Source of the DNA: Thalia democratica
Taxonomy: Eukaryota
Reading direction: 5' to 3'
NCBI GenBank assembly: GCA_965202585.1
Contig: OZ241826.1
Location: 30,566,001-30,630,000 of the forward strand
Length of the DNA: 64,000 nt
Below are positions 23,761 to 58,494 of the stretch, piece after piece. The position numbers were made by a program, and so were the translations under genes. How positions within the stretch are numbered: position 1 is the first letter of the stretch; the number at the start of each line of letters is the position of its first letter. The notes under the pieces were generated by a model. It searched no databases. It saw nothing but the letters and a program-made list of their open reading frames with translations, and was not told the DNA's origin.

Positions 23761-26700
23761 TTACAAGCAATCGGATTCCAAGCACTGTTTGGCCAAACTC
23801 AAGTGTGACATCTTATTAACTTCGAACATACTTATGTTGCTCTGTAAAAAAAATAAAAGTGATTATTTTGTTTATACACAATACACATATATAACTTAAG
23901 AAAATGTAGTATTATGTAAATTAAAATGTAATTTGATTGTTGTTTATGAAAGACTATCTTATAATAACATAATTATTCTATTTTTTTAGAAGATAAATTG
24001 ATGAAAAAAACTTTAGATTTACAAGTTTTGTTAGTATGTAAGTATGCATTATTTTTAGCTTTTACTAATCGAATAAGACATATTTTATAGTAATATTTAG
24101 TAATAAAATTTATAAAACAAGTACTTTAATGACTTAGTTATTAAGTATAAACAGCTCTAATTATGCAATTTCTAAAAATATACTTTTGTATTCTAAAGTA
24201 AGCATTAATTTTACAACCTTGTAAAACTTTTTTAGCTTATATACCTTTAAAGTTATTTTGAGGTGTTAGCTAAAAACAAGTAGACGTGTTTTAATGTACA
24301 CTTATTTCCATTATGTATACTTATAGATATACTTGTAACAACATTAGGTTTTTATATAATAAATAAACTAACCGCATGGGCATGCTGCCGAGTATCACCG
24401 CATCCAATCACGACGTACGAGGTGTTTTTGTTTCCGTACTTCCCCTTAATACGGTCGTACAGCGAGCTCTTACCCACCTTGTGAGAGCTGTACACGTCCG
24501 CAATGTCCACGTACCGGTCCAGACCAAACACCACAAGCTTGGACGCTGCCTCCACCAATTTGCTGTTCGTACAAATCACTATCTTGGCTCCGGGCCTGAT
24601 TGATTTATAACAAGTTTTAGTTTTCGCAATAGCTTAAACACTTTTATTGTTAAATATTTACTTTTAACAAAGTTTTAAAGTTTATTTTTTTGATAGAAAT
24701 TTTACTCATTTGAAAAATTAAAACTTACAACTTTTATTTCCTAATGTTTTTTAAACGTAAAAAGCTACTTTAAATACGACCACATAACAAGCTTACATTC
24801 TAGTCTACAAATGAGTTTTTGAAATTAATTTTAAGGAATTGTAGTAAAATTTTTATTTCAAAACAAAATAAAACTTATAAAACAAATTAAAAACGAAATA
24901 CAGAAAATAATAATTTGTAAGTTTAAACAGTAGAAATTCAAACTCACTTCGAAACAAGTATGTCCAATAATGCTGCGGACATCTTCAACCACGTCTTGCT
25001 CGGACCGGTCATCTTCTGGTTGTTCTTCTCAAGAGTCCTCTTGGCCGTCAGCACCCCGTCCCTTTCCCCCTGTCGGCCCTTGAAGTTGTTGTAAGTGTCC
25101 CGGATGTGACGGTATCTGTGTTGGTGGTTTTAAAATGAATGCCTGCGCTAAACACTGAAAACTTAAAAAGTGCGCGTGAAATATCTGCTGAAAGTGTTCA
25201 TGAAACTAAATTTCAAAGTGTTTTTTGTTTGAAGTTTAAAACCCATAAAAAATGAGTAGGTAAGGAAACTCAAAACCACAAAACAACCTTTAACGTCAGC
25301 TTATATGTTTTAGTATCAGTTTTAAAACTTTTGCCGAGCATACTATATTCATAAAGCTTTTGTTACTTTTTAATTGAACTTACTTTTATTTAAAGTACCA
25401 CCAGTAAGTCAATCAAAAAAAATATACAAATAGCTACCAGTTTTTACCTAAAAGCCATTTTTTTCCTCCAGTCGACGGACCCCCTCACGTGGTGGTGGTA
25501 CCCCATATCGTGGGGCACGAACCCGTCCTGGGAGAAATTGTACATGGACAGGTCCTGACCGTTGTCGTCGCTCGAAGCGTCTTCCACGTTCGACTGGTCG
25601 TAGTGCTGGTAGAAAAAAAGTTTAAATAAAAAAATTTCAGAACAATAATACTTTCTTAGAAAAGCAAGCATCGGCTGACTTCAAACGAAACGAAATTGCG
25701 CGTCCTCTACATTCGACTGGTTGTAGTGCTATTAAAAAACATCAAATTATAAATGAAAAAAAAATGTGTCGCTTCCTTTAAAAAGAAAAGCAGGCATTGA
25801 TAAATTACAAAGAACAGGCTAAATTTTGCGCATCTATATGATGTGCTGGCCAGTGGCATGCCTTTTATTAATCCAAATTTAACTTTTGCTATAAAGCAAT
25901 GTTTAAATGCATCCCCTAAGTTTAATTGTTTGCAACTAATATCATTAGTATTATATATGATTTTGCCTTTAAAAAGTTTTTATATTAGTATAGTTTTTAT
26001 GTTATATAGATCTGCAAAGTTTTTCTAGTAAATGTTTCCCATTACTTTTAAATAGCTACTAGCTTTTACACTTGGAATGAATTTTTAAAGAGTTAAAGTA
26101 TTTCAAACTACAGATTATAAAATAGTTAAGAAACATGAGACTTTTAGAAATTAATTTATATTTTTGCATAGTAGTTGTATTACGTTTTACAAAATTAGTA
26201 CAACTGTAAATAAAGCAATATTATGTTTCTAAAATATTATTTTTTAAAGGTTTTTGGTAGGACATTTTTTAGCTAAATTAACTTCAGTGTAATTTAAACA
26301 TTGGTAAATCTATACTTTATAAAACTTAAAAGCTTAGTTTTGGTTTTCCCTGTTAAAAAGTACATAATAAATACTCTAAAACTATTATTCTATACATATC
26401 TTCACACAACTCTAAAGTTACTAAATATTTAACAGTAAGGTAATATTAGCCAAAATATTTTTTTTATAAAAATAGTGTTTAAAAAGTTATAACTGCTTTT
26501 ATATATTTACATTAAATTAAGATTTTTTTATACCCTGGGAAAATTCTTTCATAGCACTTTTAAATTGGAATTTGATACTTGTTTTTTTGTTTATTCACAA
26601 AAAACTTTTTCATGGTAGATTATTTCTGCTGATTAGCCGAGCAAAGGGTGAAAACTAAGTGTTACCGTAAACAACATTTTACTGATAGCTTTTGGAATAG

Positions 26701-29700
26701 TTTCAACAAATTTATTTTACCTTGTCTCTAACGTTTTGTCTTATACTATCCAATAAAAACATTGTTATACTTCACAATATACTAAACTTAAGTAGAATTT
26801 TTTAAACTATTTATAGCTTACTTTATTGAAGACCTTTTTGAGAAATAAAAAAAGATTAGATTTGTTAACATCTCTTTAAAAGCATAGTATATCTAAAAGA
26901 TTTAACACTGCCTACTAAGTTCTTGATGCAATAAAGATTAAATGTGTAATTTATAAACAACAATAAATATAAAAAGTTCTTAAATGCATAGTATTTTGAA
27001 ACGTGTAATTACTAAACAGATAAAAAAGTGAAATTAATTGATTAATAAAACTAGAAAACGATAATAATTTTACTTCAAACCTCTTATTTATTATATAAAT
27101 CGTCATTCTTAACAATAAACTTTACAAATGTAAAGAAAAATTTGAATTTAAAGAATATTTTTCTACAAAACTTCACCAGCACTTCTATAATATTAAAAAG
27201 AAAACCGACTTTGCAGTTGTTTTTAAACAAAAAAATCGGTCCAGTTATATTTCGTATACTTTACTACATAAAAAACCATTATCAACGTTGAACTTTAATT
27301 ATGTAATTAAAAAAATAATTTTAGACAATACTTTTACAAAAAATATTTTACTAGTACTTCCATTATATTTAAAACAAAACAAACTTCGAGGTCGTTTTTG
27401 AAGAAGAATGTTTGTCCGATGTATGTGATCATGTCCATGGACCACAACTGCTGTGCCCGGGCTCGCATTTTATCCGCTTCATTGAACGCGAGTATTCTGG
27501 CGTGTCCAAACACTTTGATGTCAGGTATGAGTACATCGTTCAAATCGAAAATGTACACTCTCTGTGAATGTTGTTTTGAATAAAATGTTATATTGCTTCA
27601 AGTTTGAATAAATAAGCTAGTAGTGTTTTAATTATACTGTTTCAAATCGTGATAAAACTATAAACTGAGAAAATCTTTTGGTATTGTAACTGACAATCAG
27701 TGCAATTAACTAACAGTTTAAACTGGAAGCTCATTGCAGTCGTTGTTTAAACAAAAACAAATGGTTTCACTTAATAAAACAACAAACCATCTATTTAGCA
27801 AGTTGTTTTTAACATTTTCAAAAAAAGCTTTTGTTTCTTTTCCATTTCGACTGCGTAAACTAAACAAAATAACAAACAACAATATAAAGTTTCGTTTGAA
27901 AATAATTAAACAATTAAAAACTATGGTTCACAAGCAATTTGTACAAAAGTTTGGAAAATAATTGAATATTTCCAAAATTGCACAACAATTTAAGCATATC
28001 GCCATAAAAACTGGTATTGTAACTATTTCACAGTAAATTTTTCCCAAGCATTCTCAATTAAATTTTAAAAAGTCATACGCTTAAAAACGCATGTAAGAAA
28101 TTTCCATACAAATAATTGTCTCGCTAAAGTTGCAACCGAATAAAAACTTTTGTTTTGAACTCGCTATGTCCTTTACACCTCTCATCGCTCAATTGCACTC
28201 ACCTGAGAATGACGCGCAGGTTTTCATGGGGGCGAAGCGAAACTTGAAGCAATCAAGCCCATCACTCATCGCCACATAACAGCAGTTATAAATCACTTAC
28301 GCGGTTCGCTTCAAACAAAAACTTCACGCTTTCTCGCGATTTTCACTCTCCGCTTCCGAAACGTCAATTTTATATGACGTCACAATGAGAAAGTTTTTTG
28401 TGTGACATCGAGATTGTTATCTCAGTGATCGGTTGCACTTGTAAACTTGCGGCGGTCGAAACTGTGTCATTGAACTTTTCCGTTTTTAAAGGGGAGTAGT
28501 GCCAACTTATTGTGACGTCATAAGTGTTTGGGCAAGGAGTAATTAACTCGTTGCTCCAAGTTGTTTTGTTGCTTAAATTAATAACAACAAGTGCATTTGA
28601 AATTTTGTTTTGCTTTATTTTGTTAATCTAGTTTTCTTTGTAACTTTAACGAAAAATACTAAAAAATACTAAAGCGAAGGTAAAACAAGCTTTATAAAAA
28701 GCTTATGAAAGTTTTTATTTTAAATTTTATATTTAATGTGTTTAATACACTTGAAAATTTTACTTTATTTTCTTTTATTAAACTAACGTTGCTTGTTACT
28801 AAATTAAAAAAATTTACTACTATAAAAATCGAAAATAAACTTGAAAAAAAATTTCGAAAAAACTTATGTAAGCTTTTGTTTTAGTTTTTATACTAAATAT
28901 GTTTAATGCACTGCACAATAACAAAAAAACTTTAAAATATCGTTTTTAATAAATTTTAAGATAATTAGAAGTCTAGGTTGTGTACTTATTAATCTTTTTT
29001 ATCAAGTTTAAGGAGTTTAGACAAATGTTTTAAAGTAAATATCGAAATACTTTATTTTTTAGCAAGTAAAGTTTTATCACCTTTTGCTAAATCTTAGTTT
29101 CTTGCCTATCAAGCTAATTCGTCATTTATTCTCTAATTTTGTCTCAACCATAATTTTATGTTTTGCAATACATGCATCGTATTTTCAATTTGTAATACTC
29201 CAGTATACTCAAATTTTACAAAGATAAACATTACAAAAACTAACAGTTTTGATGTTGGGGGAAACTTCGGCGCCAAACTCAGTTTTCAGACCTGACTTGA
29301 TGGCCGCCAGCTCCTGACCACTAGGTGGCGCCTGAGACATCTCCGAGGCCTTCCGCTTCTTCCCTCCCGACTTCTTCTTGTCGAAGTAGGTAGACGGGTA
29401 CTTCATCTGGAAGTTCACCACTTTCGGATCTGTCAGTTGTGATTGGATTATAAGGTGGTTGAGAGGTTAATTAAAGTTGAACAGTTTTCAATGCTAAATC
29501 GTTTGATAAGATTAAAATTAGTGATTTCATTTGAAAGTAGTGAGCTTGTCTATAAATTCAAAAACTCAAACATACCGTTTTTAGCTGCAGTTTTCAAAAG
29601 ATTTCAGTTTCAATTTGTTTCAAATCCAAGATGAACATGAAAAAAAAAGAAGTAAGTTACAAACTTGAGTCATAAATTCTCATATAAAAAACTAACAAGT

Positions 29701-32148
29701 AATAGGAATTTTTTCATACAACTTTACTATAGTAATACAATATAAAAGCTTTTTTGTTTATGAGGACTGGGTAAAACTTTTAAAATTTGCAGTGCTTTTA
29801 CTTTACTTAAAAAAAGCAATATTTTCTATGTGTTTAAAAATTTATATTAAAAAATAACAAAAAACATTTATAAAGACTATAAAACCAACGATCATCAACA
29901 ATAGTTAAAATAAACTTCAAATTCAAACCTTCGGAAAGTGGTAAAAGCGAATAGACTTTCTGGTTGATCGGTTTCAAGTCTGCTGATTGGTTAATCTGGA
30001 AGTTGTTGCTTATCTGGTGGTGGGGGGTCGGATAATAGGGGTTGTAGTAACTTGGGTGACGGTTGCCGTAGTAACTGGCATGGTCCTGTGTAAACAAGTG
30101 AAGTCATTGTAAACAAATGGTTTTGTTGTAAAAATAAAAACTTGAATGCTTTCTGTCAAAGCTTTCTTAAGCTGTTTGAAAAAGCAACAATTATTGTGTT
30201 TCGGCGCGTTAGAGATAATTGCTTAAGAGAGGCAATTAAACGAAACGCGATTTTCGGCAGGTTGTGCAAATTAAGTGATTTTCCTTTCAATGTTGTCAGC
30301 TTAAGTTCGGCTTTAGTTTTGCAACTTTAAAAACTTTTCTTATATTTTTAATTTGTTAAAGTAATTTGAAGTTTAAAATTTTATCTACAGCTAAACATAC
30401 AAAACTTAATAACTGTTTATAATAAACTTAATATAAAGTTACCAAAATGACATGAATTTGTAATAAAAACAATACCTTCAAAGAAATTTTATGCTTTAAA
30501 GTTGTTCATAACTGCTTGCATAACTTACTTTAGAGCTTAATTATATGTTTTTACATTTTTATAGTTTGAAAAAAATATGTTTAAAGTTTTTGATGAATTA
30601 TTGAAAAATAAGCTCAAAATAAGCTGCATTTCAAAAATATTTTAAAACCCTTACAAAAATATAAAAAAGAACTAATACAAAGAAAAGCAAAAATTTTTAA
30701 GCATTTAGTATAAAATAAATATTTAACAAGTTATATTTTATTTTAATATCAAGTTTTTAACTGGATTTAATTAGCTAAAACTAACCTCTTTATTTGCATT
30801 TGTTATAACTTTAAGGTTAATGTTAAGATAGTGATTGTTTTTCATATTGTCATAAATACAAAGGTAAATTTTAAATATTAGCTTATTTAGTCCTTCTATA
30901 AAAGTACTAGTAACTTAACTTATTTTCTAAAATTAGATGAGTATATTGAAATTCTAGCTTTAATTTTTAAACAAATAAATTTGATAAGATACTCAACAAA
31001 AAGTTTAAGGTATAAAATGATAAGAGAACTAGATAAAATCCAGTAACAAAATAACATGGCATAACGTAAACCTGTCAGACATTTTAAATTAACATCAAAA
31101 GTTAAAAAAAGTATGATTGACACATAAAATGTTTTATAACTAACTATTTCAACATAATAAAAAAAAAATCTATTAACTAATAAAAACTTACATTAATAGC
31201 ATGGTGTGATACACCTCTATTATGATGGTAAACAAAATAAAATAACTAATAATAAAACTCACATTAATAGCATGGTGTGATACAGCTCAATTTTGATGGT
31301 AAACAAAATAAAACAAATAAATAATAAAACTCACATTAATAGCATGGTGAGGTGCTCCTCTATGTTGATGATGTTGAAATCCGTGCAATGGTAAGAAACT
31401 GCCTCCTATGAAAACATATAGTTATTAGTATTTATTTAGTTACTAGGTTTCATAGGATTCTACATAGATTTACATCAAACAGCACGCCATGAATACATAT
31501 GTTCTTATTTTATGTCAAAAACTAACTTTTAAATATTAAAGAAGTTGGTTGCTAAACAGAAAACATTATGCTTTACACGTTTTGAAACTAGTTTTTTTTT
31601 TTCAAAAATTAGTAAAAAGTTTTTTTTTTTCAAATTCAAAAGATAAACTTTAGTAGCAGAAACGGACAATTAACCAAAGTATGTAAAAGTTGTAGCAAAT
31701 ATTCCCTTGTGAATATAATAAGATTGTTTGTAGCTATATAAAATTATTTGTTTCTCAATTTTGGAAATTTAAAACTATTATGTAAAAGTTAAAAATTTAT
31801 TAAAATTAAGTTTCATCAAAAATTTATAAGGTTTAAAATAAAATGAAACTATATAACGGAATAAAATAACTTATTACAAGTCATATAATTTAAAGGTGCT
31901 TGCAGTTTTAAAACCATTTTTTTAATTTTAGGAAGTCTTTATTTATTTTTTTCACCCTAAATAAACAAAGTTATTGATGAATAGTATGCTTTAAATTCTA
32001 TATTTATCTTACAATAAAACATCTGAGCTGCAGTTGAAAAATAGTTTAGACCAAAAAAAATCTACGATAATACAAAAACTCTTCTAGACTAACTACCGAA
32101 AATAAACGCTTGTATTTCTTCCTTAGTAAAAGTTCGAAAAGGATTCAT
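23761..32148 (-). CDS. eya: EYA-like protein copy A (~427 aa), predicted pseudophosphatase
   Basis: Exons 32148-32094 (first exon tentative), 31405-31335, 30085-29929, 29584-29576, 29429-29245, 27561-27385, 25605-25448, 25115-24948, 24595-24373 and 23841-23761 are all GT-AG, phase-consistent and total 1284 nt. EYA-domain hallmarks: [63 protein letters not shown]. Confidence 0.9.
25681..25728 (-). other. Partial duplicate of exon start plus acceptor in an EYA-A intron ([10 protein letters not shown]..stop)
   Basis: TTAATAG|CACTACAACCAGTCGAATGTAGAGGACGCG copies the true exon start CACTACGACCAGTCGAACGTGGAAGACGCT 123 nt downstream; in-frame TGA at 25681-25683. Confidence 0.75.
28195..28525 (-). 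promoter_or_regulatory. CpG-rich promoter-like island inside an EYA-A intron
   Basis: Two inverted TATGACGTCACAA (CRE) sites at 28373-28385 and 28510-28522; strong minus-strand donors CAG|GTGAGT (~28201) and CGC|GTAAGT (~28300). Confidence 0.45.
29576..29584 (-). CDS. eya: 9-nt microexon of EYA-A (CTAAAAACG)
   Basis: ACTGCAG|CTAAAAACG|GTATGT, phase 1-1; same position and length in B and C. Confidence 0.75.
31182..31375 (-). repeat. 71-72-bp tandem triplication of an exon 3' end + 5' splice site in EYA-A
   Basis: CACCATGCTATTAAT|GTRAG occurs three times, with intron-start G at 31334, 31262 and 31191. Confidence 0.9.
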
Positions 32149-39267: not shown

Positions 39268-42200
39268 CTAGAAGATAATAATAGATCGAGAAGCAAATAA
39301 TAGATCGAGAGGCAAATAATCTAATAAATGTTGGTTTCCAAAAAACTTTTGAATAACTTCAAGTCTCCCATCTTGTGTATTGGAACGAAAGTTGTGATGC
39401 TCTGTAAAAAGTAAGTAAATGTTAATTTTAATCAGACTACTGAATAAAAAATGTTTCAATCTGTTTCAAAATAAACGTACAACACTTTTTCGGTTTACAT
39501 ATTAAACTAATAAATTGTATTTTTTCTAGTAACGTTTCACTTTAACTTGAGTTAGGTGTCATCTAAGTAAGAACAAATATTTTATACACTAAAAAGGTTT
39601 TTTAGAAATTAAATTATGAAATAAAAATTTGAGTACCTTTACTTTTAGCCTGTTAAGAACACATCAGTGTGTAACAAACTTGAAATACTTCGAATTTAGA
39701 AAATGCTTCTAACTATAATTTTCAGATTTAATGGGAAATTAATATGAAAATCTGACCTGTTGGGAGTGCTCTTTGCTGTTCACAGTCCCAATAACCACAT
39801 ACAAGTTCTTGTCTCCGTACTCTTTCTTGATACGGGCTTACACGGAGCTCTTGCCCACCACTTGAGAGCTGTACACGTCTGCAATGTCCACGTACCGGTC
39901 CAGACCGAACACCACAAGTTTGGACGCCGCATCCGACAATTCGCTGTTCGTACAAATCACTATCTTGGCTCCTGGTTTTTTTAGAAAAAATACATTATCT
40001 TGGTGTCTGATCTAATCAATGAGTTATAACTTTATTTCAAACTTAAACTACTTGTTAAACCAAGACATATAGAATAGGAAAAAAAAATAGTTAATAAAAG
40101 CAAAGTTTATAAGCAAATTGTTTAAATAAAAAAAATTATTATAAAAATTAATAGTTTATGATTGATTTTAGTTAGTAAGAAGAAGATCAAACTTGCTATG
40201 TTTAACGTCGAGAACGGCTGTGGACGCATCCAACCACATCTTAGCCGGTCCGGCCATCATCCGTTCCTTGTTTCTTGCACATCTCTCCTTGGCGTCTCCC
40301 ACCTCGTTCTGTTCTCCTTGCCAGCTCTGGAACTTCTGGTAGGTGTCACGGATCATGCGGTACCTAAAATGTTGTGTGGATTATTTTTATAAAAGTCAGA
40401 AGTTTTTTTTCCAAAACTTACTTAAGAATGGTAGAATAAAATTTTCTTCTTATATAACATATCGTAACACCTGATTTCAATTTTTTTTTTAAATAAAGAC
40501 AACAGTAAAAGCTAAGTATGAAATGAAAACTTTTCATACTTTTAATCAAAACAAAAGAAGACCATACAAACCTGATAGCAAGCTTTTTTAGAAAACCAAT
40601 TGAGTTTTTTTCTACATGGGTTCCAGAGGCATGGAGCGCAACATTGCAAAATCCATCTTGGGAGAAATCGTAAGTGGACAAGTCTATGTTAAAGTTGTCG
40701 TCTTCCGAAACATCTTCAACATTGGGCTGGCCGTAATTCTGATTAAATAGTTAAAAATGTGTTTTTATCATTAAACTTTTATCTTGTCGAACATTCAAAG
40801 TTTTAAAAAAGTTTTGTTTAATATATTTTGACCTATATTTACACGGTTTAAAAACTATGAGGTCATGCAATTGATATTGAACAATGTGGTTGTATTTAGT
40901 TTTATTTAATTATAACAAAACAGATGCATAAATATGAAGCTAATGTTTATTTATTAGCGCTCTATAGAAATTATTGCACTTGTTTTTGTTAAACAGTTCT
41001 TTGATTTATCTAATTAAGTTCAAACTTAAAATGTTACTTTCAAGTTTATTCCATCCAATAATAACATGGTAATAAAATCTAAATATAATATAACTATGAT
41101 AGTAGTTAAATTAAAAAAAAAATCTTTTCTTACACTTAATGACACTTGGAATGGTTTATATGTAATAGTAAGTATTTATTTACAGGATTTAAATATATTA
41201 GGTAAACAATATTTATGTTTTAATCAATATTTCACGGTTACTTTAAAAAAAAATTGGTCCAGAAAACGTTTATAGATTGTTTTGTTAAAAAGCATACTAA
41301 ACATTTATGTTTAGTATAACATTATATAGTTTCAGTTCACAGTTGGTTTGAACATGCGAAGTAGCAGTCATGACACAGATTACTATTTTTACATGTAATT
41401 TACAACTATGTGCTTAGATAACTATATAAATTCAATGTATTAGTTTAAGATAAAATTATTTAAATTAATTGACGTCTTATTTAATAAGTTCTTTAAAAAG
41501 TTTGCGCGTTAAAAAACGTTTAGACGTTGCAATTAAACTATACGAACAAAAATAATTGAACTGACTAACTATGTTAACAATACTAAAAATCTAAACAAAA
41601 CAAACTTCAAGATCTTTCTTGAAGAAGAAGTTGTGTCCGATGTGATCTATCATGTCAACGGACCACTCCAACAGCATTTTGGTGTCATTCTGTTCCTCAT
41701 AATTTGATGCAAGCGTTATTGCTGCTCCAAACACTTTGATGTTCGGTATAAGTACGTCATTTAAGTCGAATATGTACACTCGCTGTAATTAATGTTAGTT
41801 TTTATACAACTAGTGAATATGTAAAACGTTATGTATTAAGGTATGTTATGTGTATAGGTTGAGGTTGCCTAATGTATAAATAATAATTTTTTGGTTTAGT
41901 AAAATGCAATGGTCAACTGTAAATAATCGAATTATAAGTATTAAGTTAATCTTAGCAAAAATGAATTCGATGAATTCAGCTGTTTTTTGAAGTTAGATAT
42001 AAAAAAAAAATATAACTTGTATTAGACATTAGTTTAGAAGTTTAAAATAATTGTATTAGTGTAACGTTTAAAAAAAATGTCTGAAGAAGATTTCCATGCC
42101 CCCGTGCTTAAAGTTTAAAAATTAAAAGTTTGCACAAAAATAACTTTCAGCGCAAGTTGCTACTTGATTAATATTATTTCTGATGCAACTCAAAGCTTAA

Positions 42201-44397
42201 TCACTTAATAGTGAACAAACAACCAGCCAGTTGCCATTCTCTTTTACTCTTTCCGCTAACTTTAACGGTTAGTTTGACAACTACGTTCATATTTATATTT
42301 TCTCATTTGTTTTTTTTTCTTTTCCATTATTGGTACAACATAAACTATCACCCATTTTAGTTTAACGACAATTTTTGTTTTTTATTTTAACTTTTTAGAT
42401 CAATCAAATACAATTTTACAATAAAAATTTTGCAAAATTTAAAAGTACAACATTACAGGCGTTTGGAGTGGAGTGATACACTTTAGTAATTACTTCAAAC
42501 TACTAATAACACTTATAAGCAAAATTATTTTTTTCCGCAAACTTTATCAACTAAACAGCTCGTAAAAACCTTCTAATAAATTTTGAGTAATGAAATAAAC
42601 TTAACTTAACACTTATGTTTGAAACAAACCTTTTTAGGGGGAGGTACTATAATTTTCTTGGTTCCATTTCTTCGTTTTCTTGGTGGCATGTTGAAATAGT
42701 TTGCCGGGTACTTCATCTCAAAATTCTTAAAAGTTGGAGCTGAAAATGATTGATTGTATAAAATTCATTGTTTACTTTCCATTGTTATACTTAAAGCAAA
42801 TTACAACATTATGTAATGTTTATAATGAAAAATAAAAACTTACTATTTCGTGCTGCAATTTCAAAGATTTTGTTTTTATTTCGTTTAAATTCCATGGTAA
42901 TCGTAAAAAAATTAATATAAATTAAGTTTACATACTTTATAAAAAAAAAAGAAATTTTGCAACACATTGATTATAAATTGTACTTTAAATTTATTATAAC
43001 TAACGTAACCTCTCTGGCATTTATATATACAATAAAAATAAGCTAAATGAATGCTACATACTTTTATTAGAAAACTAAATTAATTTTGTTATTTAAAGTA
43101 TAACGATTGAAACTTAGACAAGAAATATTATTTGCAAACTAAAATAATGCAAAGTTACTGATTGTTAAACATTTAAAAGCCGAAGTTTACAAATTTAATT
43201 ACAAACCTTCAGCTATTGGCAGGAATGTATACGTTTTCATTTGTTGTGGTACCAAATTATTCCCATCATTAAAAGTAGCCGTTTGTTTTGAAACAGCTGG
43301 CTGAATAGAGTTTGCTTGGTCAACACTAGATTGATTGTTAACACTGGCTTGATTGTTAACCACTGAACTGTTGCTTGCTTGGGGTTGATTGGCATTCACA
43401 TTGGCCATCAGGTTGTAACTGGATGTACTCGCTTGAGATTGAGTGGGAATTCTTGCCTGGGGGCTACAAAGGGCGCTTCTCTGAGCGTTGTTTGTCATCG
43501 AGGTGTTATATAGGAGAGGTGTCAGGGGTAGAGGAGCCCGAAACTGATTAGGACAAGGGTATGGAGGATGAAGAGGAGGAAACTGCATGTGGTTGCCATA
43601 GTAACCTGCTGGAATCTGTAAAATATCTTTTGTAAATTTAAATGTATAAGCCTTAATAATGCAAAATGCTACATAAGTTTTCAGACAATCATTAGTTTGA
43701 AAACAACAAACTTGTTTAGTACTGTTCAAATTTATAAAGTCATTAGGATTTTTAATAAAAATTCTTATTTATTATAGTGGCTTGTTTAAAAACTCCTGTT
43801 TTTTTTCAATTGTTATTAGTATATACTAGTAAGTTGACTGTTCACTTATCAATCATTGTTTTTATGTAATAAAAATATTACATAAGTACTAATTATGCAT
43901 AAATATTACAAACTAAACTACAAATCCTAATGTATTTGGTAAGAGATTGAAAATCATTTTGTTTAGCTAAACTTATGTATATATTAAGTTCAACTATATA
44001 TCAGACTAATCTAATCTTAATTTGAGGCGAATAGTTATTATTACAGTTGATTTCAATCTAACGTTGCCAAAAGAAAATATATAATAATAAAAACCTTCAC
44101 GTCATTTGTTATCTCAGTTTGATCTTTTACCGCCAGTGAGCTCAATTGAATAAGATTTTTGCTTAATATTTTGTGGATCGAATTTGATAAAGGTGGCGCA
44201 AATTTCCTTATCACTGTAAATATCCTCATGCCTTTGTAAGCATCTTTCTGAGTTTCTATGTACAAATTGCAATGGGCTTTCAATTCCAACAATACTTTTA
44301 TATTCATTTTTGATCTTAAAACACTTAGTTGGATTTGGCATGTAAATAAAAACTGGCTGTTCGTGGAGTGCTTCGTTGATGATTGTAAACATTTCAT
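39268..44397 (-). pseudogene. eya: EYA-like copy B: disrupted in the canonical frame, possibly rescued as a frameshifted isoform
   Basis: Exons 44397-44095, 43615-43207, 42852-42844, 42739-42630, 41782-41606, 40738-40572, 40363-40193, (40006 or 39971)-39757 and 39401-39321. The homologous acceptor at 39977-39978 is mutated (AAACAGA->AAAAAAA), and TAC->TAA at 39838-39840. The alternative frame is open to a TAG at 39268-39270. Confidence 0.7.
42844..42852 (-). CDS. eya: 9-nt microexon of EYA-B (CACGAAATA)
   Basis: ATTGCAG|CACGAAATA|GTAAGT, phase 1-1. Confidence 0.75.
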
Positions 44398-47399: not shown

Positions 47400-47470
47400 G
47401 CTCGACTACTTTATTCACAACTGCACTATGACGTCACAAAGCAACACGTCATCGACGTAATCAGCTAATC
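47400..47470. promoter_or_regulatory. CRE-rich CpG island (candidate bidirectional promoter), unit 1
   Basis: TATGACGTCACAA at 47427-47439 plus CACGTCA and GACGTAA half-sites; lies between EYA-B (minus) and the orphan exon (plus). Confidence 0.4.
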
Positions 47471-48216
47471 ACAACTCGAACAAAATAGTGGTGAGGTGTT
47501 TGCTAAAGTACAGTAACGCCATCAAGTTAGTTTTTGTTGATTAATGCGATCAAACACAAACTTCATTCAATGCATGGTTGTTTTAATTATTTAGAAAAAC
47601 TGTTTAATTGTGCTGCAAAAAAAATAAAGTAGTTTTATGTTTATTACAAAGAAAACGAAGTATTAAAAATATATAGAAAAAATGTTTTACTACTATTCAA
47701 CTTTTAACTAAAAATATGAATTTAGAATAAATTTAAAACTTATTTTAATACCTGCTGGATAAACATCATTGAGTAGTTTAAAATAGTATAACTTCCGTTA
47801 TAACTAGTTTTTATTAGTCTATAAATTAAACATTAATGCTTGTAATTAAGTACCATTTTACTGCAAGACAAACAATTTTTTTCATTATAAACTTTATTAA
47901 ACTTTAGCGCTTTCGAAATTTCCAGACTGCCAATATTAATGCTTGTTTTTGCTGGTAATTAATTTCTTTAATTAATGAGATACAGCAAGGTGTTTTGATG
48001 TTAGGAAAACAAAGAAGAAATCGCCGAGTTGCAAATGACGAAAGAATTGAAATAAGTCTTGTCATCTCTTATAAGTTTGATAGTAATTATAAAAAATATA
48101 GTCTTACTCAAAAATATAGTCTTCTTTTCGGTTTGATTAATTGTTCTAGATAGTTATTAAACTTTGTCGAAATCAAGTACAAGTTTAATAAAACTTTAAA
48201 GTTTTCATTAAAACAG

Positions 48217-48384
48217 GTTTATAACAACAAGAGCCCGTCCATGGTAAGCTGCAAGCAACTCGTCGGGTTGAGGAGACAGTTGCGGTGCAAGGACTTTACC
48301 GTGGGGTTTTCCCACAACAGCAACTACGCGAACGGCAGGGCGCTAATCAACCTCCATAGAAACAACATAAAACTTAAAGTTTGA
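48217..48384 (+). CDS. Unidentified terminal coding exon (VYNNKSPSMVSCKQLVGLRRQLRCKDFTVGFSHNSNYANGRALINLHRNNIKLKV*)
   Basis: GC3-rich codons like the EYA exons; AAAACAG acceptor. Versus the unit-2 copy, the last 45 codons differ by four synonymous codons and one K/R change. Upstream in-frame TAG at 48151-48153. Confidence 0.55.
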   Translation, partial: VYNNKSPSMVSCKQLVGLRRQLRCKDFTVGFSHNSNYANGRALINLHRNNIKLKV

Positions 48385-49472
48385 CTTGTGAGCATATTGT
48401 TATGTTGTGTTAATTTTACTTGTTCGTTAGGAATTAAAAAGTTGCCTCAATTTGGTTTGAAACTATTCAAAATTTTAAAGTTTATTGAAAACTGGAGACT
48501 GTGTCAAATAGTTCTTTGTTATATACAAATAAACTTTGACGGCTAATAATTAAAGATAAGCAATTAAACTGTTGAGTAGTATAAGACAAGAACCAGCCAT
48601 TTAGATCAAATAAAATAACATTTAATTATAGTTTAAAACAGGCGGGGTGCGATAAAACGAGGGAAATTCGCGTCAAAATCGACCCCTACACGCTCCACAG
48701 CACCCAATATCTGCTAGTATGCGACAGAGGGTTAGTGGTAGACCACTGGGTACAAGTTTCAACACGGGGAATTTTCGCGATTGTGACGTGAGTCAGCTGC
48801 AGAGGACTCTAAAGAAACTTAATTGTTTGTTTTTTGAAACAATGCAGTAAGGATTTCACTCAGTTTAAATGCATGCTACTATATTACGAATATCTGTATT
48901 TAATTTTTTGACAAGCTCAGAAACAGTAAGCAAGCTTTTACTCACAGTAAGGCAGAAGAAAATTTACAAGTTTAACATATATTGTATACAGTTTATTTTA
49001 TGTATGCTTTAACCTAAACTTAATTTAAAATTTCATATATTTTTATCATAATTTTGCCATGGAATAAAATAATATTCTAAACAATTGCTGAAGAGCTCGA
49101 GATCAAGAAGTAATTCAAAGAAGAAAAGTGAACAGTAGAATGAAGAAACGAAACAAATTAAAAAACACAATACAATGCCCAAACCCAACTTCAATGTCAA
49201 GTGTGTGAATAGATTTGGTTTAGATTTAAAAAGGTTACTATTAACTTACTATGTATAACTATAGTTTAATATTAATTAAAGCATTCAAGAAATTATTATT
49301 TCAAAACTAGTCAACTTTGAAAAACAATAACAAGAAAAATGGTTGAAAATACCAATTTTCATTCAAACAAAAAATACCTGAACAACAAATTTTAGAATAC
49401 AGCAAAGTACTAAAACACCAATAAATAGACAGGAGGTGGTCAATTTGTTACTTAGAAGCGTCAAGTGGTAGC

Positions 49473-49486
49473 GTTGCCATGAAAAC
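49473..49486. promoter_or_regulatory. RFX X-box-like motif GTTGCCATGAAAAC (also 63692-63705)
   Basis: Near match to GTTGCCATGGCAAC inside a locally GC-richer island; motif match only. Confidence 0.25.
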
Positions 49487-52400
49487 TGGGAAGGGTTCTC
49501 GGTAAAATCGAACAATGGGGGGGACAAGTTGCAATTAATAGGTTGAGCAACAATAACAATAATAAGAATGATAAGAATATAATTATAATAATTATAACAA
49601 TAATATTCAATTATTATTAACAATAATTAATATACTGAAATGAATATTTACTTAAGAAACTAAACAAATCAAATTTTAATATTAAGACTGAGTTTTAGTA
49701 GAAGTTTAAATTTTTAGCTAAGTTTTAAAATCAATATAACAACAATAATAATAATAATCAAAGCTGTATGTAGCTTTCTTTTTCTTCTAAATAATTTACA
49801 GAGTAAACATTGCTTAAGCAAAAGTGTAATTAATGAAATGAGCTTAAAATTTAATTGAATTTGGTGTAGCTTATTTTAATTGTGACAAAATTATTGATAA
49901 TTTGAAGAATCTTGTGCTTTTAATCGTTATTAAAATTAAAATTTCTTCTCAAATGCTTTATATGAAAGCTTATAATTAAAATAAATTTTTACCTAAAAAC
50001 AAAACAAGTTAAATTATGGTACTAAGTTTGAATTTTTGGCAAAGTTTAAAATAGTAGTTAAATTTAAAAATCAAAGAACAACACAAACAAATAATAATAA
50101 GTGGGCTTAAGTTAAGATGCATTTTAATCAAGCTAAATTTTATTGTGACTTAAATATTGCAAAGTTAAGTAATTTTGTGCTTGTAATAGTTACCAAAGTT
50201 TGAAAATTTTGCTTGAATAATTTAGAAAAAAAAAATCTTTTAACTTTAAGAAAATTATAGTTACAAAAATTAAAAAGCATGCATAAAACCTGCATTACGA
50301 GTAATTTAAGTTTTAAAGTGGAGTTTTCGGAAGTGCGGGCAGGAATAAAAAAGTTCGTACCGTTTGTTTACCATATTATTATTTATTTATGTTGTTCTTT
50401 GATTTTTAAATTTAACTACAATTTAAACTTTGCCAAAAATTCAAACTTCACCAAAGTGATTTAAAACAATAATCATTGTAATTTTTGTATACAAAAGTTT
50501 TAAAAATCATTTCATATCATTAATGAAATATTTAATTATTTTAAATTTTGGTTATTTATAATTTAAATCTATTAAACATATAAAAGTAGAAACTCAGTAA
50601 AGTTCCATTTATTTAAATAGAAATAAGAGAAAATTTTATAGTACTTAACCTACAGTATACATTCAATTTAAACTAAAACTTAAAACTTTTAAAAGTTTTT
50701 TACTCTACCCTTAAAAATATAACAGTAAGTACAAAAATGGTGCTTTTTAAGGGTGGAGTAAAACACTGCAACAAGTAACTACTTCCTGAGCTAAAGACTA
50801 AACTAAATAGAAAAAATTATCAAACTAATGCTTCTTAATATGCTTTAAAATAATAATATAAATAGAAAACAATTAATAAATAATAACAATATGCTTTGTA
50901 GCATGAATAATGTAGTAACAAAAATCATACCATGTAGTACCAATTATAAAAAAAAACTTGTTTCTTATAGATCTAAAATAAAATAAAATGAAATGAATTA
51001 CCGTTGTAGTACTTGTCCATAACATAAATATTGTTATCTATATCCATATCGTTTGGATTTTAAAATATTTGTCGACAAATTTATGTCTTCATTTAGAAAA
51101 TATCTTAAATGTTACTTTTATTAAATTAACAGCAAATATTATCAAAATCATAAAAAGTTTTAGTGATAGCTGTAGAAGTTAATTTAATTACTTTTAATTG
51201 TAGCTTGATACCATTGTATTCCTTATTTTTACCTTAGAATATATTATCCATAATAAGTCTGTCTAAGTATTATTAAAACATATATTAATTAGATTAAGGT
51301 TCAAGGTAACATTAATGCAAATGGACATTGAAACCTGATACCAATGAAGATTTAAATTAAAATAAATTCGATTTTAAGAAGTTTAGAAGTTTATTTATAG
51401 TTACATTCATTAGCATTAAAATAATTGCGGTTATTATTAAACAGTACAGATTTAGTATCAAACTTTACGAGTTTCTAAAATAAACAAGCAAAAACTTTAA
51501 ATGTTTTAAAAAAATTCTAACTTCAACTAATTCAAACAGTCTACAGCTGGAATCCTATATTACAGATATTAAGAATAAACGCTTCATATATGTAATAGTT
51601 TAAGCATATTACAATTTTTTACCAGTAAGCTACCTATTTATTTTTTCGCCTCTTGCTAGGTATTGACTTTTGATAGGTAAAATCGCTCACAAGGTGGCGA
51701 CATCCGGGCCATAGTTACTAAAAAGTTTTTGTAGTAACCAATATAAAAATAAAATTTTAAACCAAAGTTTTTAATACAATAAACAAAAGCAAATCACTAG
51801 TAACGTGCAATAATTAAATTAAGAGCCTAGTTGTAAACTTTTACTACATAAACTTTTCTTATTACTGTTTTTTAAAGAGGTACGTTTTTAGTTGAAAAGT
51901 ACCCCGTGTGCCGCAGGTTTTAGCTATCAAGGCCGAATTTAAACCGCAGTTTGCCGACTCCGGTTTTAAGCTAAAATAATTCAAGCAATATTTTAATTTT
52001 GTATAAAATAAACAAATTTAAAAACATGAAAATAATTAAAAAATATCTAGCTTCGAAGGTATCTCAGTTAAGACGTTATAAATTTAATTTATCTTTTTTT
52101 GAAAAATGTTAAACATACTATTTTTAACTAACATGTCTTGTAAGAACTGGAGCAGAAGGTAACTGACCAAACAACAAAGCTGTTTTCATTAAAAGTAAAA
52201 TAATTGATTATTGTATTTTAATGTGCTGGTACGACCGATTAACGTCTCGTAGATGATGTTACTTAAATACGAAACTGTAGTTTCCAAAGCTAATGTTTTT
52301 TGAGTTTTTTTTTGATGTTTGTATTATTAAAACTACTATTAATATGTTTTCAAGTTCGAGTTGGCATTAACAACAGTCTATCTTTTCTAAAGTTGTTAAA

Positions 52401-53411
52401 AGTCAAGTCGTGAAAGATTGAAAGACCATCCAGCTTTTTATTTTCTTAGAAATACTATTTATTACAACTTATGTATAAGGAATAAAATTCATTCTGCATT
52501 TCGAACCTTTGTTTTGTAATAGTTTAAGATAAAACAAATAAAAGGTTTCCTCGTACAAAGAACAATTTACCGAATTGAATTAAGTTGTCAATTAGCTTGT
52601 TGTATTTATTAGAAATAGTAGGCTTCAGGTATATTAAATTGCTTGTTACACTATTTTTTTTAATGCTATTTAATAGTCTTCAATTTAAGTTACCAAATTA
52701 TTGACAGTTGTGTTTTATGTTATTATATACAACTCTATATTTAAAGTTTTAGTTCGAAGCTTATTATATTTAAATCCAGAAGTAAAAAATGTAGAATACA
52801 ATAGAAAGCATATTGTTAAACATCGATATTTTAAATATTAAGCTACTTAACTTCTACAAATAAAATATATTATAAATTATACAAATAAACAATGTCTATC
52901 CAGGATATTTATTACAGAATAAATCTTTAAATAGTATGCAACTACTACATCTAGTAAACAATATTGTTTGAACTATTTTTAAAACTTGAGAAATAATTGT
53001 TATTATATGTTCTTTAATTCTTTTTTTAAATTGATTATTATCTATCTGTGTAAGTCTTTATGGGAAAAAACCAAATAGAAAATAAAAAACTCCTAATTAT
53101 TTTGTTCTTTATCAGCTTAATTGACGTAAACCTTAAAGTAATGAAGGTAGTTTTAAAGTTTATGACAAAAATCAATAAAAAACAAGTACCTTTATAAATA
53201 AATATAAATTAGGCTTATTATAATAAAAACTTAAGTTCAACGACTTTTTCTAATTTAAGAACGCAAAATTTTTATGCAAATGTTTAAATTATAAAATAAA
53301 AAACAGCGTAGTTAATGTTTTATATTTATTAGTAAAAATGAAGCATATAGATTATGTACTAGAAGATAATAATAGATCGAGAAGCAAACAATAGATCGAG
53401 AGGCAAATAAT

Positions 53412-56400
53412 CTAATAAATGTTGGTTTCCGAAAAACTTTTGAATAACTTCAAGTCTCCCATCTTGCGTATTGGAACGAAAGTTGTGATGCTCTGTAAAA
53501 AGTAAGTAAATGTTAATATTAATAAGACTTCTGAATAAATACGTTTTAAAATATTACAAAATAAACGTACAACACTTTTTGGGTTTACATTTAAACTAAT
53601 AAATTGTATTTTTTCTAGTAACGTTTTACTTTAACTTGAGTTAGGTGTCATCTAAGCAAGAACAAATATGTTATGCACTAAAAAGGTTTTTTAGAAATTA
53701 AGTTATGAAATAAAAATTTGAGTACCTTTACTTTTAGCCTGTTAAGAACACATCAGTATATAACAAACTTGAAAAATTTCGGATTTAGAAAATGCTTCTA
53801 ACTATAATTTTCAGGTTTAATGGAAATTAATATGAAAATCTAACCTGTTGGGCGTGCTCTTTGCTGTTCACAGTCCCAATAACCACATACGAGTTGTTGT
53901 CTCCGTACTCTTTCTTGATGCGTGCGTACACGGAGCTCTTGCCCACCACTTGAGAGCTGTACACGTCTGCAATGTCCACGTACCGGTCCAGACCGAACAC
54001 CACAAGTTTGGACGCCGCATCCGACAATTCGCTGTTCGTACAAATCAAGTTCTTGGCTCCTGGTCTGTTTAGAAAAAATACATTATCTTGGTGTCTGATC
54101 TAACCAATGAGTTATAACTTTATTTCTAACTTAAACTACTTGTTAGACCAAGACATATAGAATAGGAAAAAAAATAGTTAATAAAAGCAACGTTTATAAG
54201 CAAAATGTTTAAATAAAAAAATCTATTATAAAAATTAATAGTTTATGATTGATTTTAGTTAGTAAGAAGAAGATCAAACTTGCTATGTTTAACGTCGAGA
54301 ACGGCTGTGGACGCATCCAACCACATCTTAGCGGATCCGGTCATCAACCGTTCCTTGTTTCTTGCACATCTCTCCTTGGCGTCTCCCACCTCGTTCCGTT
54401 CTCCTTGCCAGCTCTGGAACTTCTTGTAGGTGTCACGGATCATGCGGTACCTGAAATGTTGTGTAGATTATTTTATAAAAGCTCAAAAGTTTATTTTTTT
54501 CAAAAGTTACCTAAGAATGATATTAATAAAAATTTTCTCAATGCTCAACTGTTAGCATACATGATTTCAGTTGTTATTTAAAATTAATACAACGGTAAAA
54601 ACTAAATATAAAATGAAAACTTTTGATACTTTTAATCAAAACAAAATAAAAACACCATACAAACCTGAACGCCAGCTTTTGTAGAAAACCAATTGAGTTT
54701 TTTTCTTGGTGCGTTCCAGAGGCATGGAAAGCAATATTGCAAAATCCATCTTGGGAGAAATCGTAAGTGGACAAGTCTATGTTTAAGTTGTCGTCTTCCG
54801 AAACATCTTCAACATTGGGCTGGCCGTAATTCTGATTAAATAGTTAAAAAATATGTTTTTATCATTAAAATTTTATCTTGTCGAACATTCAAAGTTTTAA
54901 AAAAGTTTTGTTTAATACATTTTGACCTATATTTACACGGTTTAAAAACTATGAGGTCATGCAATTGATATTGAACAATGTGGTTGTGTTTAGTTTTATT
55001 TAATTATAACAAAACAGATGCATAGATATGAAGCTAATGTTTATTTATTAGCGCTCTATAGAAATTATTGCACTTGTTTTTGTTAAACAGTTCTTTGATT
55101 TATCTAATTAAGTTCAAACTTAAAATGTTACTTTCAAGTTTATTCCATCCAATAATAACATGGTAATAAAATCTAAATATAATATAACTATGATAGTAGT
55201 TAAATTAAAAAAAAAATCTTTTCTTACACTTAATGACACTTGGAATGGTTTATATGTAATAGTAAGTATTTATTTACAGGATTTAAATATATTAGGTAAA
55301 CGATATTTATGTTTTTATCAATATTTCACGGTTGCTTTAAAAAAAAAAATGGTCCAGAAAACGTTTATAGACTGTTTTGTTAAAAAGCATACTAAACATT
55401 TATGTTTAGTATAACATTATATAGTTTCAGTTCACAGTTGGTTTGAATATGCGAAGTAGCAGTCATGACACAGATTACTATTTTTACATGTAATTTACAA
55501 CTATGTGCTTAGATAACTATATAAATTCAATGTATTAGTTTAAGATAAATTTATTTAAATTAATTGACGTCTTATTTAATAAGTTCTTTAAAAAGTTTGC
55601 GCGTTAAAAAACGTTTAGACGTTGCAATTAAACTATACGAACAAAAATAATTGAACTGACTAACTATGTTAACAATACTAAAAATCTAAACAAAACAAAC
55701 TTCAAGATCTTTCTTGAAGAAGAAGTTGTGTCCGATGTGATCTATCATGTTAACGGACCACTCCAACAGCATTTTGGTGTCATTCTGTTCCTCATAATTT
55801 GATGCAAGCGTTATTGCTGCTCCAAACACTTTAGTGTCCGGTATAAGTACGTCATTTAAGTCGAATATGTACACTCGCTATAAATAATGTTAGTTTTAAT
55901 ACAACTAGTGAATATGTAAAACGTTATGTATTAAGGTATGTTATGTGTATAGGTTGAGGTTGCCTAATGTATTCATTATAATTTCTGGTTAAGCAAAATG
56001 CAATGGTCAACTGTAAATAATCGAATTAAAAGTATTAACTTAATTTTAGGAAAAATGAATTCGATGAATTCAGCTGTTTTTTGAAGTTAGATATAAAAAA
56101 GAAAATATAACTTGTATTAGACATTAGTTTAGAAGTTTAAAATAATTGTATTAGTGTAACGTTTAAAAAAAATGTCTGAAGAAGATTTCCATGCCCCCGT
56201 GCTTAAAGTTTAAAAATTAAAAGTTTGCACAAAAATAACTTTCAGCGCAAGTTGCTACTTGATTAATATTATTTCTGATGCAACTCAAAGCTTAATCACT
56301 TAATAGTGAACAAACAACCAGCCAGTTGCCATTCTCTTTTACTCTTTCCGCTAACTTTAACGGTTAGTTTGACAACTACGTTCATATTTATATTTTCTCA

Positions 56401-58494
56401 TTTGTTTTTTTTTTCTTTTCCATTATTGGTACAACATAAACTATCACCCATTTTAGTTTAACGACAATTTTTGTTTTTTATTTTAACTTTTTAGATCAAT
56501 CAAATACAATTTTACAATAAAAATTTTGCAAAATTTAAAAGTACAACATTACAGGCGTTTGGAGTGGAGTGATACACTTTAGTAATTACTTCAAACTACT
56601 AATAACACTTATAAGCAAAATTATTTTTTTCCGCAAACTTTATCAACTAAACAGCTCGTAAAAACCTTCTAATAAATTTTGAGTAATGAAATACACTTAG
56701 CTTAACACTTATGTTTGAAACAAACCTTTTTAGGGGGAGGTACTATAATTTTCTGGGTTCCATTTCTTCGTTTTCTTGGTGGCATGTTGAAATAGTTTGC
56801 CGGGTACTTCATCTCAACATTCTTAAAAGTTGGAGCTGAAAATGATTGATTGTATAAAATTCATTGTTTACTTTCCATTGTTAAACTTAAAGCAAATTAC
56901 AACATTATGTAATGTTTATAATGAAAAATAAAAACTTACTACTTTGTGCTGTAGTTTCAAAGATTTTGTTTTTATTTCGTTTAAATTCCATAGTAATCGT
57001 GAAAAAAATTAATATAAATTAAGTTTACATACTTTATAAAAAAAAAGAAATTTTGCAACACATTGATTATAAATTGTACTTTAAATTCATTATAACTAAC
57101 GTAACCTCTCTGGCATTTATATATACAATAAAAATAAGCTAAATGAATGCTACATACTTTTATTAGAAAACTAAATTAATTTTGTTATTTAAAGTATAAC
57201 GATTGAAACTTAGACAAGAAATATTATTTGCAAACTAAAATAATGCAAAGTTACTGATTGTTAAACATTTAAAAGCCGAAGTTTACAAATTTAATTACAA
57301 ACCTTCAGCTATCGGCAGAAATGTATACGTTTTCATTTGTTGTGGTACCAAATTATTCCCATCATTAAAAGTAGCCGTTTGTTTTGAAACAGCTGGCTGA
57401 ATAGAGTTTGCTTGGTCCACACTAGCTTGATTGTTAACACTGGCTTGATTGTTAACCACTGAACTGTTGCTTGCTTGGGGTTGATTGGCATTCACATTGG
57501 CCATCAGGTTGTAACTGGATGTACTCGCTTGAGATTGAGAGGGAATTCTTGCCTGGGAGCTACAAAGGGCGCTTCTCTGAGCGTTGTTTGGCATCGAGGT
57601 GTTATATGGGAGAGGTGTCAGGGGTAGAGGAGCCCGAAACTGATTAGGACAAGGGTATGGAGGATGAAGAGGAGGAAACTGCATGTGGTTGCCATAGTAA
57701 CCTGCTAGAATCTGTAAAATATCTTTTGTAAATTTAAATGTATAAGACTTAATAATGCAAAATGCTACATAAGTTTTCAGACAATCATTAGTTTGAAAAT
57801 AACAAACTTGTTTAGTACTGTTCAAATTTATAAATTCATTAGGATTTTTAATAAAAATTCTTATTTATTATAGTGGCTTGTTTAAAAACTCCTGTTTTTT
57901 TTTCAATTGTTATTAGTATATACTAGTAAGTTGACTGTTCACTTATCAATCATTGTTTTTATGTAATAAAAATATTACATAAGTACTAATTATGCATAAA
58001 TATTACAAACTAAACTACAAATCCTAATGTATTTGGTAAGAGATTGAAAATCATTTTGTTTAGCTAAACTTATGTATATATTAAGTTCAACTATATATCA
58101 GACTAATCTAATCTTAATTTGAGGCGAATAGTTATTATTACAGTTGATTTCAATCTAACGTTGCCAAAAGAAAATATATAATAATAAAAACCTTCACGTC
58201 ATTTGTTATCTCAGTTTGATCCTTTACCGCCAGTGAGCCCAATTGAATAAGATTTTTGCCTAATATCTTGTGGATCGAATTTGATAAAGGTGGCGCAAAT
58301 TTCCTTATCACTGTAAATATCCTCATGCCTTTGTAAGCATCTTTCTGAGTTTCTATGTACAAATTGCAATGGGCTTTCAATTCCAACAATACTTTTATAT
58401 TCATTTTTGATCTTAAAACACTTAGTTGGATTTGGCATGTAAATAAAAACTGGCTGTTCGTGGAGTGCTTCGTTGATGATTGTAAACATTTCAT
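53412..58494 (-). CDS. eya: EYA-like protein copy C (~548 aa), predicted pseudophosphatase, intact frame
   Basis: Exons 58494-58192, 57711-57303, 56948-56940, 56835-56726, 55877-55701, 54831-54665, 54450-54280, 54064-53845 and 53492-53412; all GT-AG, 1647 nt, no internal stop. The first exon assignment is less certain. Confidence 0.85.
56940..56948 (-). CDS. eya: 9-nt microexon of EYA-C (CACAAAGTA)
   Basis: ACTACAG|CACAAAGTA|GTAAGT, phase 1-1. Confidence 0.75.

Follow-up and report, generated by a model that had tools for sequence, protein, structure and literature searches.

Three EYA genes, EYA-A, EYA-B and EYA-C (hereafter A, B and C), lie in tandem in a 64,000-nt stretch of Thalia democratica DNA (assembly GCA_965202585.1, contig OZ241826.1, positions 30,566,001 to 30,630,000 of the forward strand), which we call the window; the region 23761-58494 holds all three. 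Residues on which phosphatase chemistry depends in EYA are replaced in every copy. We estimate at roughly 60% the probability that these genes represent a tandemly expanding, lineage-specific family of highly divergent EYA paralogues, which would have kept the fold, would no longer turn over phosphotyrosine and would act by binding. Retention of the family by selection is supported: A is a working gene and the only demonstrably functional copy in the window, while B is a pseudogene and C is probably drifting towards loss.

Degenerate catalytic motifs in a wider EYA family

Homology to EYA extends over the whole domain. Exons are numbered here from the one carrying motif I (exon 1, 27561-27385 in A) to the one carrying motifs II to IV (exon 4, 24595-24373 in A). 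Exon 4 of A matches human EYA3 and EYA2 structures in the PDB (E ~2e-9), with VGKSS aligned on IGKES and GCGD on GDGR. The EYA domain model TIGR01658, whose curated cut-off is 195 bits, matches at the single-exon level exon 4 at 8e-15 and exon 2 at 1e-7. Exon 1 alone gave no EYA match in the PDB and no candidate in a word-index protein search. The spliced domains were then scored on a profile of 270 positions that we built from 133 canonical EYA domains: A reaches 166 bits over positions 1-267 and C 128 bits end to end, compared with 380-490 bits for canonical, hydrozoan and tardigrade domains. The window domains are ~25-33% identical to canonical EYA domains, which among themselves are 50-63% identical even between distant phyla. 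Judged by these alignments, the domains of A and C are complete but extremely divergent EYA domains. The upstream exons, as far as they are defined (the 5' end is lacking), would also fit the EYA architecture: a low-complexity part rich in Tyr, Pro, Ser, Asn and Gln, then a basic cluster, then the EYA domain.

In HAD phosphatases, to which EYA belongs, the Asp two positions after the nucleophile (D+2) protonates the leaving group and activates water as general acid/base, and the acids of motif IV hold Mg. The normal consensus of motif I is DxDx(T/V), and the acids of motif IV can be spaced in several ways. An initial annotation, made from the letters of the window, had placed FDLNDV, GCG or GTV, and GKSS in the three copies; all of them translate as claimed on the minus strand, exact to the base (coordinates in the table). 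Its statement that the nucleophile Asp and the motif III Lys are kept also holds, GKSS being present in all copies, and the motif II Thr is found in each as ICTNS. The motif IV Asp is replaced by Cys in A (GCGDTRQ) and by Thr in B and C (GTVNSKE), and the Glu pair by RQ and KE respectively. The reported absence of EE after motif IV is thus correct for A and overstated for B and C, where one E remains. Likewise the cap segment DDN..DLS.Y.FSQDGF is exact in A, while B and C have the same block with one extra residue. The second cap segment, W/F.KK.AFRYR, is indeed present, as FLKKLAIRYR in B, as FLQKLAFRYR in C and as a counterpart in A.

Three independent alignments place the Asn at D+2 and the replacement of the motif IV Asp by C or T identically. 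Four extra residues follow motif I relative to canonical EYA. One conserved block is identical in A and B/C, though the domains are only ~56-60% identical and the synonymous divergence (dS) is >1; within exon 1 the motif I block is the best-conserved part. Whole-domain homology together with motifs II and III thus assigns the genes to the EYA family, while motifs I and IV depart from it. Taking a pseudophosphatase as a homologue that lacks residues essential for catalysis, the replacement of D+2, of the motif IV Asp and of the Glu pair puts these genes in that class by sequence. The alignments and profile scores bear out a lineage-specific tandem EYA expansion with D+2 and the motif IV Asp replaced, as first proposed.

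Relatives of these genes are found in ocean metagenomes. An exhaustive profile-free search with exon 4 returned 104 proteins, 4 of them close (71-91% identity) and the rest canonical EYAs (32-48%). Together with the word-index search it led to seven short single-exon predictions on eight ocean metagenome contigs, several from Tara Oceans. The eight exon-4 variants (L001-L008) all have an AG acceptor, a GT donor and an open frame, and all keep the motif II Thr and the motif III Lys (ICT(N)S, VGKS). Their motif IV reads GSG, GEGEE, GTV, GTL or GTA, and GDG in none. An acid stands two positions past the lost motif IV Asp in 9 of the 11 sequences; it is D in A, L001, L003 and L005-L008, E in L002 and L004, and it is lacking in B and C. 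Two scans of JGI metagenome contigs, with an exon-4 profile and with a degenerate FDLNDV pattern, gave no match.

The genome itself may hold more copies. In DNA runs of the organism (X3, X4) the summed contig depth is ~660-1500 on exons 4 and 1 of A (24300-24699, 27300-27699) against ~100-330 on introns, and a variant at 27523 occurs on five distinct contigs. The raised exon depth suggests further paralogues, at least 90% identical, elsewhere in the genome. Two canonical-type EYA exons on AT-rich contigs (P0005, P0007) were considered as the missing canonical copy and rejected, as they come from many unrelated runs. A tree that included EYAs of cnidarians and bilaterians put the window clade outside the cnidarians but without resolution, on a branch of ~3.5 substitutions/site. 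A resembles Hydra at YDQS...DAS, but other hydrozoans lack this likeness, and we did not use it for placement.

Transcription, selection and fate of the copies

Two marine metatranscriptome runs of one sample (X1, X2) contain part of A. Along 23700-29699 the RNA contigs give depth in exon bins and zero in intron bins, except for a trace of 1.6 at 26300-26499, while the DNA runs X3 and X4 cover exons and introns alike. The RNA joints 23841/24373, 25605/27385 and 27560/29245 fall exactly on modelled exon ends (GT..AG on the gene strand). Read on the plus strand they show CT..AC, and TC..AC with one letter between at 27560/29245. The joint 25118/25451 is the exon 2/3 junction, moved by 3 nt through a synonymous single-nucleotide polymorphism, and a loose RNA end at 24595 spells the exon 3/4 junction. 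The differences listed between RNA and window in the exons of A are all synonymous (12/12), 11 of them at third codon positions (P ~5e-5). From the exon coverage, the joints and the synonymous differences it follows that A, or a near-identical ocean allele, is transcribed, spliced and under purifying selection. For C, a query of 53830-54830, more than half of it exon, returned only DNA runs and no RNA run, which is a weak negative.

We then compared the copies by the ratio of non-synonymous to synonymous divergence (dN/dS). Between A and C it is 0.27 over the domain (dN 0.35, dS 1.28; bootstrap 0.16-0.40). The initial annotation had named a value near 1, with absence of transcripts, as the mark of plain decay, and the value found is not near 1. 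Between A and its closest metagenomic relative, L001, it falls to 0.05, and the exon-4 pairs that include neither B nor C lie mostly at 0.05-0.37.

The picture differs for the pair B/C: over 446 codons dN is 0.032, dS 0.046 and dN/dS 0.69 (0.38-1.44), and the divergence of exons (3.4%) is close to that of introns (3.7%). Polarised with A, 7 residue changes are derived in B and 8 in C. Among those of C, I-V has become N-L in the strand that precedes the motif II Thr, and K has become N ahead of motif IV; the rest of the family is invariant at both sites. Because the B/C divergence is neutral-like and the derived changes of C resemble those of B, C is not visibly constrained since the duplication. 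C diverges from B at a neutral-like rate, like a broken copy despite its open frame, and is probably a young duplicate of B's ancestor.

B is a pseudogene by two lesions in exon 4: the acceptor is AA instead of AG at 39978-39977, and an in-frame TAA stands at 39840-39838, where C has TAC. The intact frames announced for A and C are there, open across all eight defined exons. The claim that the copies are retained stands for A, by its spliced RNA and dN/dS of 0.05-0.27, fails for B and is not supported for C. Expression, which the initial annotation proposed to check, is found for A, spliced, and no RNA run with C was recovered. Expression together with constraint is thus seen in A only, and not in B.

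Gene models and surroundings of the cluster

The three genes lie on the minus strand, head-to-tail, at a spacing of ~14 kb, in AT-rich DNA (G+C 21-34% per 2-kb window, mostly ~25%). Searches with the spliced domains (tblastn) found exactly three EYA copies in the window and no relics beyond those described here. Exon ends were set in all copies from reading frames and GT/AG sites, with eight exons per copy; in C every junction of the model has AG/GT. The first definable exon has no in-frame ATG in any copy, so at least one 5' exon is absent from each model.

Features of the EYA cluster and its surroundings, in window coordinates
Feature	Position	Strand	Remarks
EYA-A	23761..30085	-	eight exons; start-codon exon not found; stop TAA in last exon
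EYA-A exons	30085-29929, 29584-29576, 29429-29245, 27561-27385, 25605-25448, 25115-24948, 24595-24373, 23841-23761	-	1158 nt, open
Motif I of A, FDLNDV (canonical WDLDET)	27532..27549	-	nucleophile Asp kept; Asn at D+2; Thr replaced by Val
Motif I of B and C, DLNDV	41753-41767 (B), 55848-55862 (C)	-	preceded by F, as in A
Motif IV region of A, VVIGCGD (canonical VVIGDGx)	24394..24414	-	Mg-binding Asp replaced by Cys, EE by RQ
Motif IV, GCG or GTV	24397-24405 (A, GCG), 39781-39789 (B, GTV), 53869-53877 (C, GTV)	-	
Motif III, GKSS	24463-24474 (A), 39844-39855 (B), 53932-53943 (C)	-	Lys kept
EYA-B (pseudogene)	39321..43615	-	from frames and splice sites; same structure as C, two lesions
EYA-B exons	43615-43207, 42852-42844, 42739-42630, 41782-41606, 40738-40572, 40363-40193, 39976-39757, 39401-39321	-	
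EYA-C	53412..57711	-	open frame, 447 codons, 1344 nt; 5' end not found
EYA-C exons	57711-57303, 56948-56940, 56835-56726, 55877-55701, 54831-54665, 54450-54280, 54064-53845, 53492-53412	-	
9-nt microexon	29576-29584 (A), 42844-42852 (B), 56940-56948 (C)	-	same place in all copies
Tandem duplication units	36364-49782 and 50450-64000	.	self-BLAST; 94-96% identical; carry B and C
Downstream block of A	22714..23503	-	relic of a last exon (E5b), then conserved non-coding sequence
Non-coding block past the last exon	22714-23455 (A), 38628-39364 (B), 52699-53455 (C); 795-1509 (L003)		~850 nt
Overlapping open reading frames upstream of B and C	44056-44452 (B), 58153-58549 (C)		two, of 112-114 residues
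C-type lectin-like open reading frame	18236-18721	-	single exon, 161 residues
Large direct and inverted repeats, with an open reading frame of acidic repeats	1473-11815 and 4538-6340		unit ~2 kb, 400-bp sub-repeats

In self-BLAST, A is similar to B and C in exons only (72-84%) plus one downstream block. The microexon differs in sequence between copies (CTAAAAACG in A, CACGAAATA in B, CACAAAGTA in C) with the frame kept. That of A is found in RNA, where a loose end at 29430 spans it and continues into the exon upstream.

The last exon of B and C is not positionally homologous to that of A. A placement in B and C at 39649-39614 and 53738-53703, suggested by DNA alignment with the last exon of A and implying a truncated C-terminus, was ruled out because L003 has an intact last exon farther downstream, which is kept in B and C. 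Two versions of the last exon are thus in use: the upstream one in A, where RNA backs it, and the other in B, C and L003 (759-845). A retains a decayed copy of the second version, the E5b relic (~23503-23415), with in-frame stops, and B and C may hold a decayed copy of the A-type exon near 39614-39649 and 53703-53738. This arrangement suggests that the terminal exon was duplicated in tandem long ago and that different genes then lost different versions. The non-coding block past the last exon is 60-80% identical among A, B/C and L003, although introns are unalignable and dS is >1. It contains no open reading frame and no Rfam match, and may be a constrained 3' untranslated region.

The short open reading frames upstream of B and C belong to the duplicated unit; Pfam gives no match for them, and A has no counterpart upstream. 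The initial annotation closed the region at 58494, which is the ATG of one of them; its status as an EYA exon is only putative. The C-type lectin-like frame is the only other clear gene in the window (protein atlas features score 0.95). The repeats are 96-99% identical, and a 600-residue open reading frame there is made up of acidic repeat units of ~29 residues in tandem. An Rfam scan of the window gave no match.

Alternative readings and relation to known systems

From the sequence we infer a loss of catalysis, a nuclear role and partner binding. The EYA domain would fold, but without the Asp at D+2 and the motif IV acids it would be unable to turn over phosphotyrosine substrates. The protein would then act by binding: to SIX-type partners, either as a transcription cofactor or as a competitor, and, alternatively or in addition, to phospho-ligands. 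The role of EYA-type cofactor or competitor would be the simplest, because the nucleophile, the Thr, the Lys, the cap blocks, the basic cluster and the low-complexity N-terminus are kept.

Several points weigh against this proposal. The change of Thr to Val in motif I is within the HAD consensus and so is uninformative. The conserved acid two positions past the lost motif IV Asp may mean that metal binding survives, with residual or altered chemistry; because this acid is conserved outside B and C, we temper the claim of a dead site. Motifs I to III are the best conserved in the family, which fits a pocket in use, whether for binding or for modified catalysis, as well as upkeep of the fold. 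At ~30% identity to canonical domains the surface that meets SIX partners may have changed. The RNA consists of assembled contigs of one environmental sample and not of the sequenced animal, and the 5' exon or exons of all copies are lacking from the gene models.

The same residues could also belong to active HAD phosphatases with a rearranged site, in which the +2 Asp or Glu takes over metal binding and the general acid is dispensable, either through good leaving groups (acyl or phosphoramidate phosphates) or because a stable phospho-Asp is formed. The nucleophile Asp does not vary among A, B and C, and neither the Thr of motif II nor the Lys of motif III varies among these three and the eight exon-4 variants; the conservation of the +2 acid (9/11) and of the motif I block within exon 1 would likewise be expected of such a site. 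P-type ATPases, members of the HAD superfamily, have no Asp at D+2 either. We know of no EYA with such a site shown to be active, and A has replacements at D+2, at the motif IV Asp and at both Glu. As D+2 is the general acid/base in HAD phosphatases, and EYA needs the Glu that follows motif IV according to in vitro assays of Eya3 E478Q and fly E728Q that PMC3595212 cites, we consider an active enzyme unlikely.

Less probable still is an assembly artefact in which B and C are two haplotypes of one locus, one of them null, laid in tandem by the assembler, so that the window would hold two EYA genes. The two units, each ~14.1 kb, are 94-96% identical, a value within marine invertebrate heterozygosity, and several introns (the first four) differ by 1-2% only. 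But the window has no N runs or gaps, the units lie head-to-tail with 668 unique bases between them, and their identity ranges from 85% to 96% along the length, the intron between exons 3 and 4 differing by 21% (39977-40192 in B, 54065-54279 in C). Tandem duplication is the simpler reading, and the uneven divergence along the unit may reflect gene conversion or replacement. The idea that the whole cluster is decaying, as three pseudogenes or as expressed relics without function, draws on the broken B, on the neutral-like divergence and lack of RNA support of C, and on domain scores far below canonical EYA. It is contradicted for A by correct splicing at every junction, by RNA variants that are synonymous throughout (12/12) and by a dN/dS of 0.05-0.27, and the eight other exon-4 variants are open with intact splice sites; we hold it to be very improbable.

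We thus favour divergent EYA paralogues that have kept the fold, lost turnover and act by binding. A more particular version is tentative, and we would sooner doubt than accept it: a sizeable, expressed, lineage-specific family that has lost the general acid and the canonical metal ligands, but keeps under strong constraint the phosphate-binding triad (nucleophile Asp, Thr, Lys) and a relocated acid, might comprise natural phospho-substrate traps or sensors, or a new catalytic variant of the HAD site. If this holds, the family would act in this animal either alongside a canonical EYA or in its place. Natural EYA paralogues kept by selection without the catalytic acids are an evolutionary experiment on whether development needs the EYA phosphatase, a need disputed since phosphatase-dead fly Eya rescued the null (PMC3595212); the hydrozoan EYAs described below, which in all sampled cases lack the motif IV Asp, are likewise such an experiment. 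The window EYAs would also be ready-made separation-of-function proteins for roles of the EYA domain besides catalysis. For some lineages, an automatically assigned name like 'protein phosphatase EYA' may be wrong.

Canonical EYAs (Drosophila Eya, vertebrate EYA1-4; TIGR01658; PDB 3GEB, 4EGC, 9N0Y) share with the window genes homology over the full length of the domain, the cap blocks, the nucleophile Asp, and the Thr and Lys of motifs II and III; a low-complexity Tyr/Pro/Ser-rich N-terminal part with a basic cluster before the domain may be common to both as well. They differ by WDLDET in place of FDLNDV, by GDGxxEE in place of GCG or GTV, and by the absence of the four-residue insertion after motif I; they are single-copy, whereas the window genes are multi-copy and in tandem.

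Several full-length EYAs of other animals in the databases have a degenerate motif IV. A search seeded with Hydra EYA gave six hydrozoan sequences (Hydra, Clytia, Cladonema and three transcript assemblies; P0053, P0120-P0124), none with the motif IV Asp (GNG, GNR or GSG). GDG is intact in the EYAs of scyphozoans and anthozoans. Nearly all other entries have a precomputed HAD Pfam match, but the hydrozoan ones have none. Hydra EYA reads WDLDDV in motif I and GSG in motif IV. The corresponding pairs are WNLDET and GNG in the tardigrade Ramazzottius, WNVDNT and GSQ in the orthonectid Intoshia, WDLDGV and GRG in the acanthocephalan Neoechinorhynchus, and WDLEDT/GNA and WDVDEV/GES in two unnamed metagenomic or transcript EYAs (P0023, P0098, P0066, P0043 and P0101 for these five). 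Thus loss of catalytic residues is not unique to this genome. The hydrozoan and tardigrade proteins resemble the window genes by the replaced motif IV Asp and are otherwise mostly ordinary, with 380-445 bits against the canonical profile and the EE pair kept; the hydrozoans also keep D+2. None of the degenerate database EYAs is known as a tandem family, in contrast to the window genes. What is new here is that Asn at D+2 and the loss of the motif IV Asp and Glu pair occur together with extreme divergence and with expansion in tandem. In a full-text literature search we met no account of an EYA pseudophosphatase, nor any of the degenerate database EYAs under that name.

Dead paralogues kept as binders or regulators exist among phosphatases of other folds, such as those related to myotubularin, and STYX. 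The concept is the same, but they have the unrelated Cys-based fold of protein tyrosine phosphatases and not that of HAD. Engineered fly Eyas lack catalytic acids and work as cofactors without the enzyme: genomic rescue constructs with D493N or E728Q fully restore eye formation and viability (PMC3595212). Work cited in that paper reports a loss of activity in vitro for D493N and a severely lowered activity for mouse Eya3 E478Q, the homologue of fly E728Q. Therefore an EYA without phosphatase can still carry a developmental function; the E478Q/E728Q data indicate that catalysis depends on the Glu that has been lost here, and that the developmental role can do without catalysis. The fly D493N mutant, an experimental construct and not a natural gene, removes the nucleophile, whereas in the window genes the nucleophile stays and the general acid is gone.

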